From the sequence record PP456879.1: a DNA stretch of 64,000 nucleotides; one strand, given 5' to 3'. Positions 5,195 through 9,032 of the stretch are shown one piece after another; the first letter of the stretch is position 1; each line of letters opens with the position of its first letter. The notes under the pieces are model-generated. The model ran no database searches. It worked only from the letters and a program-made list of their open reading frames with translations, and had not been told where the DNA came from. The position numbers and the translations under genes are program-made.

Positions 5195-6028
5195 CTAATA
5201 TTTTCTTCGTTCGATATCCTGTAGTTTCGCGAATGTGTCGAGCTTGTATTGGTCAACAAAATGCCAGGCTAGATCGGTAAGTGTATAGATGTCCGGACGT
5301 TCGTATTTACCGAAGTCTGGTTTCTCACGACTCAATTGAAAATCGATGAACTGATCTAATATAGGGCAACGATCTATCAGATCCTGTTCAATAGACCCAA
5401 CCTTATCATTAACCAGTTCTTGGATACGTTTATAAAGGATAGGATCTGACAGAAGAGGCAGTAGGTCATGGAATACCATCGGCGGATGTTCCAGACTTTC
5501 ACGGACCCACATTGCAGCCAACAGAGGACGAAGAGAATAGAAGTATTTCTTCATCCGGATCTTCTCATCTGACAACCAACGCATTTTGGTTTGTTTGGCC
5601 ATCGAGATATAGTGCATGTAACTCGATTCAGGGATGAAGTGTTTTAGCGCAGCATCGCGGATTAACATGTAGTCCCGATCAACCTTACGGTAAACGATTG
5701 GGGAGTTTAGCCATTCCAAGAGAGTGGGGTTAGACTTGTAAGCAAGCTGAAGAGTCTTAGTGATACTCCAACCAGCCAGGTCTAGTTCTTTAGACACCAT
5801 CTCTTCAATAGTATCACGTGCTTCATTATCCACACGAACATAATGACTCGGATGATTAACATAAATGAAACGAACATCATAGTCACTATTGATAGAAGCA
5901 AAGCCCCATCCGCGACTACCGGACTCACAGGCATAGATGACTTTTACACCATACTTCTTCTCGATGCGATTAAGTTCAGTATCGATGATTGCGCGCATTT
6001 CGTCGCTAACTGGATGCCGTGGATCCAT
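5195..6028 (-). CDS. RlaP/YcgL-like predicted nucleotidyltransferase (Pol-beta superfamily)
   Basis: YACESGSRGWGFASINSDYDVRFIY (GS...DxD), LKSNP-like AYKSNPTLLEWLNSPIVY, KKYFYSLRPLLA. Confidence 0.88.
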   Translation of the reverse strand: MDPRHPVSDEMRAIIDTELNRIEKKYGVKVIYACESGSRGWGFASINSDYDVRFIYVNHPSHYVRVDNEARDTIEEMVSKELDLAGWSITKTLQLAYKSNPTLLEWLNSPIVYRKVDRDYMLIRDAALKHFIPESSYMHYISMAKQTKMRWLSDEKIRMKKYFYSLRPLLAAMWVRESLEHPPMVFHDLLPLLSDPILYKRIQELVNDKVGSIEQDLIDRCPILDQFIDFQLSREKPDFGKYERPDIYTLTDLAWHFVDQYKLDTFAKLQDIERRKY

Positions 6029-6435
6029 TATCCACCAACCTTTTCAAATTTGAGTTTTTCTTCTTTACCTGTGTCCAGATACATGAACATCGATGTACCC
6101 AGCAAGTTGTATACAAACCAACCTTTGCTCACAAGTTCCTCTTCGAATTTCGGTGGTGCCGATAGTTCGCATATAGCCTCGTACGGGATGACAATAGGCT
6201 CTTTCTCGGGCTTAGTAAGAATCAGTGCATGATCTGCAAGCTTCAACCATTGTTTGCGACTACTGATACCAAGACCAATACTAAACTCTTCACCTGGATC
6301 TTTTCCGTTAAAAAGGCTACAGCGAGTTTCTTTGGTTACTCTATTACCGGCGATACCGATCGTGAGAGGATCAGGAAAGACCCCCATCAGTTCAATAACC
6401 ATTTCAAGTTGACGCTTCAGTTCAGTGTTGTTCAT
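6028..6435 (-). CDS. hypothetical protein
   Basis: 135-aa ORF, TAATG-coupled to the nucleotidyltransferase. Confidence 0.72.
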   Translation of the reverse strand: MNNTELKRQLEMVIELMGVFPDPLTIGIAGNRVTKETRCSLFNGKDPGEEFSIGLGISSRKQWLKLADHALILTKPEKEPIVIPYEAICELSAPPKFEEELVSKGWFVYNLLGTSMFMYLDTGKEEKLKFEKVGG

Positions 6436-6568: not shown

Positions 6569-6871
6569 TTAGACAGCAACTTTACCAGCAATGTGTGGAT
6601 GATATTCGTAGTTCTCGATAACAAAATCATCTACACCAATTTCCCGAATATCTTTACCAATAGCTTCTTGTTTGAAACGAATAGTTGGTAGAACTTTCGG
6701 TTCACGAGTTAATTGAAGATCAGTTTGTTCTTGGTGGTTAGAGTAAATATGTACATCGCCGCCAGTCCAGATAAACTCTTCAGCAATCATATTCATTTGG
6801 TTAGCCAGCATATGAGTAAGCAGACTATAGAACGTGATGTTAAAGGGTTTTCCTAAGAAAGTATCGACGCT
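6569..6871 (-). CDS. thyA: thymidylate synthase, exon 2
   Basis: From 6871: SVDTFLGKPFNITFYSLLTHMLA...WTGGDVHIYSNH...YEYHPHIAGKVAV*; in frame with track ORF 6569..6811. Confidence 0.93.
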   Translation of the reverse strand, partial: SVDTFLGKPFNITFYSLLTHMLANQMNMIAEEFIWTGGDVHIYSNHQEQTDLQLTREPKVLPTIRFKQEAIGKDIREIGVDDFVIENYEYHPHIAGKVAV

Positions 6872-7961
6872 CTCTTATGTTCACCCAGGGTCGTTAATCC
6901 TGAGCCGTTTACTTAAATGACTTTATAACCAGAATACTTTGGATTCTTGCTGTTAATTCGGTATGTTATTGTACCCTGTGATACTCCGAGAGCCTTAGCT
7001 GCATCGGCCTGGGATAAATAAACAACACCGTCCACTTCAAGTTTGTTTGAGTTAGTTGGCTTTATACTGCGTTTGTTATCCGCCAACTTTTTTCTGGTTT
7101 CTTCGGAATGTGTTTTACCGTAGAATGGATTACGTTCGCCTGTTCTCTGAGAAGCTATCTCCGACATCCTGGCTCTTGTCTCATCACTAGCTTTAATGCC
7201 AAGACGGTAAGTGTTACCCGTGTGTAACTCGGATAGAGCTACCTTAACTTCTTCTGTGTGAGTACGACCATACATCCCATTCTGCTCACCTGGTCGACCA
7301 TACTTTTCCTGACGAGCCTCGGCTCCAATCTCATCAAGTCTGATACGTATTGTATCACTCCGCTTCTCGATGATTTGTTCTTTGAGGTTATGCCTGGTTA
7401 AGTTATCACCACCCTTGGAGTGTCTACCAATATTAAGAAGGTTACCTTCTTCTTCATGCTTGGTTATCCACATCTGTTCGAGTGTAAATGCTGATTCCCG
7501 ACTTTCACAACGATAGTACTTTAACGAGAATCTTTCACCGTTATCGTATTCTTGTTGTAATGGGTAGTTATGGTGCTTGGAATTACTAAGGTCTCTGAAA
7601 TGTCGTTGAACGCGCTTAACTAAATCTCGCGCACTTCCGACATATACCTTTCCTTCTTTGGTGAATAGGCAATACACATAAGCTACGTCATTAATAACAC
7701 CCTCCTTATCTGGCGGAGTCATTAAGTAAACCGCTGCATGTCTCCATGCAGGACAGACTATATCACGATCTCTTAAAAAGAGACCCCTACCTTTTCGGAC
7801 CACTTGGTCCTACTCTACTCCCTTCCTCTTCTCAGAGTGGTTTCGATAGTCGTTAGGCATTTATGACCGTAGTCAATTTAGCACGGGATTGTCTCATAGA
7901 GAGTTTCCCCGTTTAGATAGGTTATTCGACTAGGATTGCTCCTAGAAGGCGCTAGTATTTA
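6872..7961 (-). mobile_element. self-splicing group I intron (T4 td-like) in thyA, 1090 nt
   Basis: Exon 1 ends in U (CAG CGU). The intron starts UAAAUACUAGCGC (P1 with U.G at the splice site) and ends ...GAACAUAAGAG (omega-G 6872). The core closely resembles T4 td: CTATCTAAACGGGGAAACTCTC..AGACAATCCCGTGCTAAATTG..ATAAATGCCTAACGACTATC..GATATAGTCTG..CTGCATGGAGACATGCAG..GATTAACGACC. P7 is GACTA/TAGTC (7847-7851, 7756-7760). Confidence 0.95.
6913..7722 (-). CDS. intron-encoded GIY-YIG homing endonuclease with NUMOD3 repeats and C-terminal HTH
   Basis: YVY-x9-YVG, R..H, E, LN catalytic motifs; NGMYGRTHTEE and NPFYGKTHSEETR (NUMOD3); YLSQADAAKALGVSQGTITYRI (HTH). First in-frame ATG downstream of the core is 7722; the track start (7803) lies inside the ribozyme core. 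Confidence 0.9.
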   Translation of the reverse strand: MTPPDKEGVINDVAYVYCLFTKEGKVYVGSARDLVKRVQRHFRDLSNSKHHNYPLQQEYDNGERFSLKYYRCESRESAFTLEQMWITKHEEEGNLLNIGRHSKGGDNLTRHNLKEQIIEKRSDTIRIRLDEIGAEARQEKYGRPGEQNGMYGRTHTEEVKVALSELHTGNTYRLGIKASDETRARMSEIASQRTGERNPFYGKTHSEETRKKLADNKRSIKPTNSNKLEVDGVVYLSQADAAKALGVSQGTITYRINSKNPKYSGYKVI

Positions 7962-9032
7962 ACGCTGGTAGAGCTGGCAGCTCAATGCACGTTTAGGAAC
8001 ACCAAGTTTATCCCACAGTGCGTGATCAGTTTCCGGTTGCGCACCTTCAAGGAAAATACGTTGAGCTTCAGTGTCGTTAAGTTTGACCCAGTCATACCGT
8101 TCTTCTAGCGTCAGTTCACGAGTCCAGAACTGAAAGAAGCTATGACATGGTGGGAGCGCCTGTTCATCAACGAGTTGCGGTGACCACGCACAAACGATGA
8201 TTCGACGGGAATCAGGGTTTGTCTTAAGTTGATCAATCACGTCTTGAATTTGATCAATACGACGTGTTACAACACAGCGGTCATTCTCCATACACGTACC
8301 AGGAATATCAACTACGAAGTTAAAGCCACGCTTCTCATAATCCACCCACTCATATTTAGGGATTACACGAGTGTCTTCAAGATCACGCCAAGTCTTACCG
8401 TAAACGGCACCTAGATCGCCCCCGATGAGTTTCAGAGGCTTAACTCCAAATAGCAATTTATATAGTCGTTTACCATATTCATATTTAATTAGTTCTGGTG
8501 TTACACTCTCATCGAAATCTATAGTAGATACTGCCAGCCATTGGCTAGTGTTAACACCAATTACATGCGTAGCATCAATATTAATGGTTGGATATTGATT
8601 CCAAAAGCTAGCTATCTCATCATCACTTAAAGAAGCTTCAAACTCATCTCTAGTTTGAATGATTACTTCATCATCTAAACAATGAAAATAAAGGGCAAAT
8701 GGGCCACCAACTTTCTTTAGAATAGCTGAGTCAAGCTCTTCTTGATTTAACTCACGATACATCGCGGTATTTGGTTTAACCCATTCATTCCAAATGCGTA
8801 CGCCATTTTCAATTAAATAATCTACACGAGTATCACCAGAAAGCATCCAGAACAATTCATGGATAACAGATGGAAGATGAATTTTCTTAGTAGTTACTAC
8901 GGGTAGAACGTTGTTACGTAAACTATAACGTTCTTGTTGACCAAACATGCTCTGAGTACCAGTACCAGTACGGTCACCTTTATGCACACCGTGTTCTTTA
9001 ACTAAACGAATTGAATTAAGATATTGTTCCAT
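7962..9032 (-). CDS. thyA: thymidylate synthase, exon 1 (with large insertions)
   Basis: DRTGTGT, PVVTTKKIHLPSVIHELFW, GDLGAVYG, NPDSRR, ALPPCH catalytic Cys, CQLYQR; the apparent TAA stop is the first intron triplet. Confidence 0.95.

Follow-up and report, generated by a model that had tools for sequence, protein, structure and literature searches.

In a 64,000-nucleotide (nt) stretch of sequence record PP456879.1 (hereafter the window), the thymidylate synthase gene, thyA, of a phiKZ-like Pseudomonas phage is very probably interrupted by a mobile group I intron of the IA2, T-even type, inserted directly after the catalytic arginine of the motif YQR/S (a slash marks the insertion point here and below). 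The intron is real, correctly delimited, and of an already known kind; T4 td and Bacillus mojavensis thyA are textbook examples of thymidylate synthase genes that hold group I introns encoding GIY-YIG endonucleases. We demonstrate its anatomy, the empty sites of its relatives, the conservation of its structure, and a population signature of transfer. Between positions 6400 and 9100, the window was 100% identical to the Pseudomonas Phikzvirus phages vB_Pae10145-KEN51 and PA02 over the stretch compared. The GenBank records list two "thymidylate synthase" genes and a homing endonuclease at this locus and leave the intron unannotated, as had been anticipated in a preliminary description of the window, made from its sequence alone, which expected automated annotation to call two broken genes.

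The limits of the intron are set by natural alleles that lack it. Among 47 Phikzvirus records holding thyA, 12 carried the intron and 35 did not. The 12 intron-plus records represent 11 phages—KEN51, PA02, NK1, T2P, U1B, U5, phi9_PA9, OMKO1, fMGyn-Pae01, SL2, and Wadjak 1—and the intron-less set includes phiKZ (gp235), PA7 (gp124), Churi (gp074), and Bobae. The uninterrupted alleles of these last four phages read ...CQLYQRSCDTFLGKPFN..., and the boundaries of the intron are therefore exact, with the insertion precisely between the Arg and Ser codons. The preliminary description, which had proposed looking for such intron-minus alleles, was right in its coordinates, in the in-frame join of the two gene fragments, and in the bases that it assigned to the splice sites. 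At the site itself, empty alleles (CAAAGA/TCTTGT) differ from intron-plus alleles (CAGCGT/AGCGTC), so that the exon strand of helix P1, together with its terminal U, must arrive with the intron; from position +7 on, the two allele classes are identical for ~50 nt. A scan of IMG/VR returned one locus at 69% identity, an uninterrupted jumbo-phage thyA with the junction CAGCGT/TCGGTT (YQRSVD). In this related gene, a P1-compatible exon sequence is already present without an intron.

Each exon was recognizable on its own as a piece of thymidylate synthase. Exon 1 matched positions 1 to 156 of Pfam profile PF00303 (Thymidylat_synt; E = 2.4e-52) and exon 2 positions 169 to 266 (E = 1.9e-32), so that the two pieces abut in the profile. 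For the spliced model, searches were run with each exon separately, and the exons were joined solely in local alignment scripts that compared them with the natural intron-less alleles. The translated open reading frames (ORFs) contain all of the motifs PPCH, YQR, SxD, PFN, and HIYSNH. Exon 1 closes with the Arg codon CGT (7964-7962), and its closing bases, CAGCGU, form the exon strand of P1.

Evidence for the ribozyme comes from model matching, folding, and covariation. A search with Rfam model RF00028, which the preliminary description had put forward as a check, gave a match at 7971-7734 on the minus strand that covered the whole model (positions 1 to 253) and, at 69.4 bits (E = 1.6e-15), exceeded the gathering score of 50. 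This match is far above chance level and was the sole Rfam match across the window. The first base of the intron, U7961, stands behind the exon-terminal U7962, which can pair with G7952 as the U·G pair of P1, and the last base is G6872. P1 has 6 base pairs (bp), in which exon GCGU and intron UA pair with UAGCGC. Folded alone, the core reached -73.7 kcal/mol (z = -3.26), a value equaled by 0 of 200 shuffled sequences, and the same helices were recovered; these include P3 to P7, on whose folding the preliminary description had made its reading depend. All pairs of P3, P4, P6, P7, P7.2, P8, P9, and P9.2 are standard in the window sequence (Table 1).

Table 1. Features of the interrupted thyA gene and its intron, in positions of the window
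Feature	Position	Strand	Details and basis
thyA exon 1	7962..9032	minus	357 codons; ends ...LSCQLYQR, then a stop codon; ORF list, Pfam, alignment with intron-less alleles
Group I intron	6872..7961	minus	1,090 nt, IA2-like; RF00028; precisely missing from Churi, PA7, phiKZ, and Bobae
thyA exon 2	6569..6871	minus	100 codons plus stop; starts SVDTFLGKPFN; Pfam PF00303
Ribozyme core, complete	7734..7961	minus	Intron positions 1-228; Rfam alignment, minimum-energy fold, covariation
Internal guide UAGCGC	7954-7949	minus	Rfam alignment
P2	7945-7930	minus	Core coordinates
P3/P4/P5/P6	~7921-7860	minus	Core coordinates
P7, 5' strand	7853-7846	minus	Core coordinates
P7.1	7837-7826	minus	Core coordinates
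P7.2	7810-7797	minus	Core coordinates
P3, 3' strand	7791-7786	minus	Core coordinates
P8	7785-7767	minus	Core coordinates
P7, 3' strand	7761-7755	minus	Core coordinates
P9	7751-7734	minus	Core coordinates
P9.1, 5' strand	7716..7735	minus	Contains ATG 7722-7720; duplex with 6900-6925
P9.1, 3' strand	6900..6925	minus	Contains the final codons and TAA stop of the endonuclease ORF
P9.2 hairpin	6884..6904	minus	Stem CUCAGG / CCUGGG, loop AUUAACGAC; fold -9.0 kcal/mol
3' terminal segment UGAACAUAAGAG	6872..6883	minus	Closes with the terminal G (6872)
Homing endonuclease ORF	6913..7722	minus	269 amino acids from ATG; GIY-YIG, two NUMOD3, and I-TevI-type helix-turn-helix DNA-binding domain
AAGGAGG, Shine-Dalgarno-like motif	7701..7707	minus	Within the first codons of the ORF; in-frame ATT (7695-7693) 5 nt on
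Putative co-conversion tract	7962..8361	minus	100% identical to T2P in the intron-nearest 150-nt bins; ~400 nt that differs from the otherwise identical intron-less Churi

Covariation was assessed in a MAFFT alignment of five ORF-deleted cores only (the window intron, its SL2 variant, td, nrdD, and RisingSun). Within this set, compensatory double changes were found in P3 (A-U, C-G, and G-C), P4, P6, P7, P7.2, and P9.2, including a change from U-A to C-G in P7 of RisingSun and from C-G to U-A in P7.2 of SL2. P9.2 combines three different stems with one conserved loop, the same as in T4 td. The terminal segment UGAACAUAAGAG is homologous to UGAACAUAAUG in td and UGAACAUAUUG in RisingSun, and each of the three abuts its own 3' splice site. 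P9.1 is a duplex of ~18 bp (-21.4 kcal/mol) that 0 of 1,000 shuffled sequences matched. P7 and the 3' strand of P3 are separated by a 52-nt insertion that forms P7.1 and P7.2, homologous to the P7.1/P7.2 of td and nrdD. This arrangement is a hallmark of subgroup IA, and the intron belongs to group I, subgroup IA2, of the T-even type; the preliminary description had likewise called it a group I intron of T4 type.

Two T4 introns resemble the window intron in different ways. T4 td interrupts the same gene with an IA2 core; P3 to P6 are identical at 47 of 51 positions (92%), P7 and J8/7 do not differ, and both introns have the same P9.2 loop and 3' terminal UGAACAUAA. The claim that the core is nearly colinear with td holds for P3 to P6 and for this 3' tail but not for P7 to P9, which as a whole are 65 to 68% identical to both td and nrdD. 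The td intron is inserted at FLG/LP, 21 nt downstream of the window site (T4 reads ...YQRSVDVFLG/LPFN..., in agreement with the preliminary description), and carries its ORF in P6, whereas in the window the ORF forms a loop of P9.1 and follows the complete core on its 3' side. By insertion site and ORF placement, the window intron is not an orthologue of the td intron. In ORF placement the preliminary likeness to td thus fails, and the layout is that of the T4 nrdD (sunY) intron with I-TevII, in which a full core comes first and the ORF lies 3' of P9; Rfam aligns both of these introns end to end. The nrdD intron is also the best match to the window core in T4 DNA (69% over 197 nt). Unlike the window intron, sunY sits in another host gene and its ORF extends into the 3' exon, whereas the window ORF is followed by a td-like P9.2 and tail.

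The ORF in P9.1 encodes a putative homing endonuclease whose N-terminal GIY-YIG domain matches PF01541 (E = 5.5e-9) and whose C-terminal DNA-binding region matches PF07460 in two stretches (E = 1.6e-16) and PF20987 (E = 1.7e-12). Its matches in the PDB—1mk0, 1ln0, and 1i3j (E = 1.4e-12 for the last)—are domains of I-TevI, an enzyme of the same family with 33% identity. In an alignment with I-TevI and two other homologues, residues Y15, Y27, R37, H41, H50, E82, and N94 were invariant; we take their counterparts to be Y6, Y17, R27, H31, H40, E75, and N90 of I-TevI. The Cys-rich zinc-finger segment of I-TevI aligns with the second NUMOD3 repeat of the window endonuclease, which has no zinc finger. 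Because a NUMOD3 repeat occupies that place, presumably as in I-BmoI, the predicted architecture is I-BmoI-like rather than strictly I-TevI-like. Near the start of the ORF, ATT 7695-7693 sits where the RisingSun homologue has ATG (AAGGAGG-TTGTT-ATG; the 5' part of the RisingSun intron ends AAGGAGGTTGTTAT(G)). In this region (7692-7707), an out-of-frame ATG lies 9 nt past AAGGAGG and is followed by a stop after two codons (ATG ACG TAG). The ATT at the ancestral start position and the out-of-frame ATG may act to damp translation or may just reflect decay of the start. Expression of the endonuclease is likely to be low and regulated whichever start is used, as is the case for T4 intron endonucleases (PMC2988022).

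The closest homologues of this endonuclease (38 to 41% identity) all lie within split thyA genes, in Erwinia RisingSun and Joad, Dickeya JA29, Vibrio phiKT1028, and Bacillus LY2. In RisingSun (gp186 to gp188) and phiKT1028, thyA is split at the same R/S site as in the window. In JA29 and LY2 as well, a homologous endonuclease divides thyA, and to judge by the exon ends, which fit R/S, it apparently does so at this site. The RisingSun intron, shown by alignment to be 1,089 nt long, has the same P9.2 and tail as the window intron, and both it and the phiKT1028 intron have a P1 guide and P2 nearly identical to those of the window. Their ORFs start ~135 nt from the 5' splice site, in P6, whereas that of the window starts 240 nt from it, in P9.1. 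Homologous introns at one site therefore hold homologous endonuclease genes in different loops, which illustrates the separate evolution of intron and endonuclease ORF. At the RF00028 gathering threshold, there was no match at the RisingSun, Apostate, and SPbetaL1 loci; RisingSun falls below it because the ORF in P6 interrupts the model, and T4 td and nrdB also score below this threshold. The homologue in Acinetobacter phage Apostate is not intron-borne; it is free-standing and adjoins an unsplit thyA. The thy intron of Bacillus phage beta22 reportedly also sits at the R/S site (work of Bechhofer and colleagues from 1994), a correspondence that the preliminary description had drawn.

A second point of reference is the I-BmoI system of B. 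mojavensis thyA. In the substrate oligonucleotide of I-BmoI, the insertion falls one base past the critical G-2 and eight bases before C-ATG-GCC-TTG-GGA, and G-2 and G+7 are the bases critical for the enzyme (PMC3664794). From this oligonucleotide we infer that the B. mojavensis intron occupies the same Arg/Ser site of the same host gene as the window intron, with G-2 as the middle base of the Arg codon. Both G-2 and G+7 are present in the empty Phikzvirus alleles, which for this reason look cleavable, and the A at -2 of the intron/exon 2 junction would shield the intron-plus allele. The architecture of I-BmoI—GIY-YIG, NUMOD3 repeats, and helix-turn-helix, without a zinc finger—is that predicted for the window endonuclease, a likeness of domain arrangement. 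The systems differ in that the window intron resides in a Gram-negative jumbo phage and its ribozyme is closest to T-even introns.

The distribution of the intron among Phikzviruses bears the mark of transfer. Compared with the window copy, the intron was identical at 1,089 of 1,090 positions in Wadjak 1, NK1, and T2P, at 1,087 of 1,090 in OMKO1, and at 1,067 of 1,091 in SL2. Identity of the intron is thus 97.8 to 99.9%, although exon 1 has diverged far more between the same phages: exon 1 of the intron-plus phages compared is of two very different types, with 31 to 81% matched bases per 150-nt bin and a length difference of 87 to 93 nt. Wadjak 1 has a phiKZ-type thyA in which the intron-associated type is limited to ~43 nt upstream and ~30 nt downstream of the intron. 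A tract of ~400 nt upstream of the intron is common to NK1, T2P, and the window, and OMKO1 and SL2 are intermediate mosaics. The source phage of the window has flanks that are PA7/phiKZ-like (99% identity on each side), yet nearly the whole of its thyA is of the other type; it also keeps a homologue of gp236, which the other intron-plus phages compared do not have. In Churi and Bobae, the exon 1 of the window is found up to about position -400 and is followed by phiKZ-like empty-site sequence. The exon tracts that travel with the intron consequently range from ~45 nt to the entire gene and are centered on the insertion site, which the shortest (Wadjak 1, ~75 nt of exon) brackets tightly. Tracts that differ in length but share the insertion site as their center are what homing with co-conversion classically leaves behind (PMC2988022), and this range indicates that the intron probably homed between Phikzviruses recently.

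The anatomy, conservation, and population pattern together suggest how the element would work. The pre-mRNA would fold into the P1-P9 core, and an external guanosine bound in P7 would attack past the U of the P1 U·G pair. The released exon 1 would then attack past the terminal G6872, and exon ligation would yield a single thymidylate synthase of 457 residues (...CQLYQRSVDTFLGKPFN...). During mixed infection, the I-TevI/I-BmoI-type GIY-YIG product of the P9.1 ORF is expected to cut intron-less thyA near the insertion site, and repair off an intron-plus genome would copy the intron along with a variable length of flanking exon.

It is also conceivable that the intron splices but is immobile, the shared intron and mosaic exons having been distributed by ordinary homologous recombination between coinfecting Phikzviruses. 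The region is mosaic in any case, as seen in the presence or absence of the gp236 homologue and in the hypervariable exon 1. We nevertheless consider such an origin improbable, given that the endonuclease ORF is intact in 12 of 12 intron-plus records (98 to 100% identical) with all catalytic residues kept, that the tracts center on the site down to the shortest one in Wadjak 1, and that the nearest endonuclease homologues all lie in thyA at the same or apparently the same site in unrelated phages, as is expected of a site-specific homing enzyme. There is still less reason to favor a decayed relic, in which the intron no longer splices and thyA is broken and dispensable while the host thyA supplies deoxythymidine monophosphate. 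Spliced RNA has not been observed, and the phage gene may be dispensable in the laboratory; against this, the core is complete and above the Rfam cutoff, all of its helices are intact, the variation between SL2 and the window is compensatory or confined to loops, and both exons have stayed open and conserved in 11 phages isolated independently of one another, with the catalytic motifs listed above in place. These features make a relic very unlikely. Least credible of all, to the point that we give it almost no weight, is a gene split by a free-standing endonuclease, whose two fragments function as a two-piece enzyme and are not spliced at the RNA level. Aeromonas phage Aeh1, with its split nrdA, offers a precedent for such an enzyme, and the annotation of two thymidylate synthase ORFs around an endonuclease gene fits it. 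However, exon 1 and the endonuclease ORF are separated by a complete ribozyme, exon 2 does not open with a start codon (its first ATG would give 80 of 100 residues), and the split falls inside the active-site motif YQR/SxD.

Some results weigh against a mobile, splicing intron. No convincing P10 was seen; by eye, AGCGUC and the bases 5' of G7952 offer a G·U and perhaps one more pair. The endonuclease start is uncertain, in that ATG 7722 is sequestered in P9.1 and lacks a Shine-Dalgarno sequence, while a good one precedes ATT. No donor outside Phikzvirus was found by tblastn against 50,697 phage records or in the IMG/VR scan; with the 134-residue co-converted tract and the endonuclease as queries, tblastn returned nothing ~80 to 90% identical outside the intron-plus Phikzviruses in those phage records. 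Finally, no spliced thyA junction was present in the public sequencing runs examined. The sole RNA-library run with the intron-plus allele, a sludge metatranscriptome (run X15), gave contigs that were 100% identical to the window, which places an intron-plus Phikzvirus in the sludge that was sampled. These contigs cover 6855-7832 and 8451-8818 at a depth of ~4, are unspliced over the 3' junction, and may be DNA carry-over. Run X1 was DNA-like and intron-plus, runs X16 and X18 held phiKZ-type intron-less transcripts, and RNA sequencing runs of phiKZ infection carry the intron-less allele. The public RNA runs weigh neither for nor against splicing.

Several observations concern the surroundings of the intron. 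The Phikzvirus thymidylate synthase has an insertion of ~150 residues relative to the Pfam model (protein residues 2 to 306 correspond to profile positions 1 to 156). The middle of exon 1 (8350-8800) is hypervariable between the two allele types, with 31 to 71% matched bases per 150-nt bin; the alleles differ by 87 to 93 nt in length, and the flanks outside the gene are 99% identical. Downstream of thyA on the minus strand, a 135-amino-acid ORF (6028-6435) is a homologue of PHIKZ236 with no Pfam match. It is present in the source phage, PA7, and phiKZ and absent from Churi, T2P, NK1, OMKO1, SL2, and Wadjak 1, making it a second presence/absence polymorphism adjoining the intron locus. The next ORF (5195-6028, minus strand; 277 amino acids) is a PHIKZ237 homologue that matches PF10127 (RlaP, RNA repair pathway DNA polymerase beta family nucleotidyltransferase; E = 5.3e-88).

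The thyA intron is not the only group I intron of these phages. Two more RF00028 introns (84 to 85 bits) lie outside the window in the KEN51 genome, at 235774-236002 and 249915-250235 of PP456879.1. Both are between fragments annotated as "RNA polymerase beta subunit," one of them adjoins an HNH endonuclease gene, and both are also found in PA7 and Churi, which have no thyA intron. Churi and Wadjak 1 each have one RF00028 match beyond what their thyA status explains. The preliminary description had pointed to a T4-type ribozyme that had moved into a nucleus-forming jumbo phage; such a ribozyme is indeed present, but it is no first, given the two RNA polymerase introns of the same genome and the intron of Pseudomonas jumbo phage PhiPA3. 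In that nucleus-forming phage, a group I intron that comes with the homing endonuclease gp210 and whose presence varies among relatives (phiKZ does not have it) has already been published, and a competitive effect of gp210 was demonstrated (Birkholz et al. 2024, PMC11620839). Whereas gp210 is an HNH nicking enzyme in an RNA polymerase gene, the window encodes a GIY-YIG enzyme in thyA. In the literature searched, we found no paper describing the thyA intron of Phikzviruses. What is added here is of some value: probable recent homing in nucleus-forming phages, the placement of the ORF in P9.1, and a family of R/S-site thyA introns across jumbo phages.

In the annotation of at least 11 sequenced Phikzviruses, the therapy candidate OMKO1 among them, what is very probably a single enzyme of ~457 to 490 residues appears as two thymidylate synthase fragments. 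The T4 relatives of this ribozyme need translating ribosomes for efficient splicing in vivo. It is possible, although we advance this only tentatively, that the thyA intron actively homes from one nucleus-forming Phikzvirus to another. If so, a cytoplasmically made GIY-YIG enzyme must enter the phage nucleus of a coinfecting intron-less relative, where it may also serve as an interference weapon like PhiPA3 gp210, and a T-even-type ribozyme must splice in a ribosome-free nucleus or only following export. In that case, the naturally occurring co-conversion tracts would provide the first evidence from the field that a homing endonuclease gains access to DNA in the phage nucleus. Intron-plus phages (KEN51, PA02, and OMKO1) and intron-minus phiKZ form a natural pair within one genus of nucleus-forming phages, which provides, beside PhiPA3 gp210, a second system, with a presumed GIY-YIG double-strand cutter. 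With this pair, it can be tested whether homing endonucleases enter the phage nucleus of a competitor and confer a competitive advantage, and at what place group I splicing occurs in cells that keep transcription and translation physically apart.

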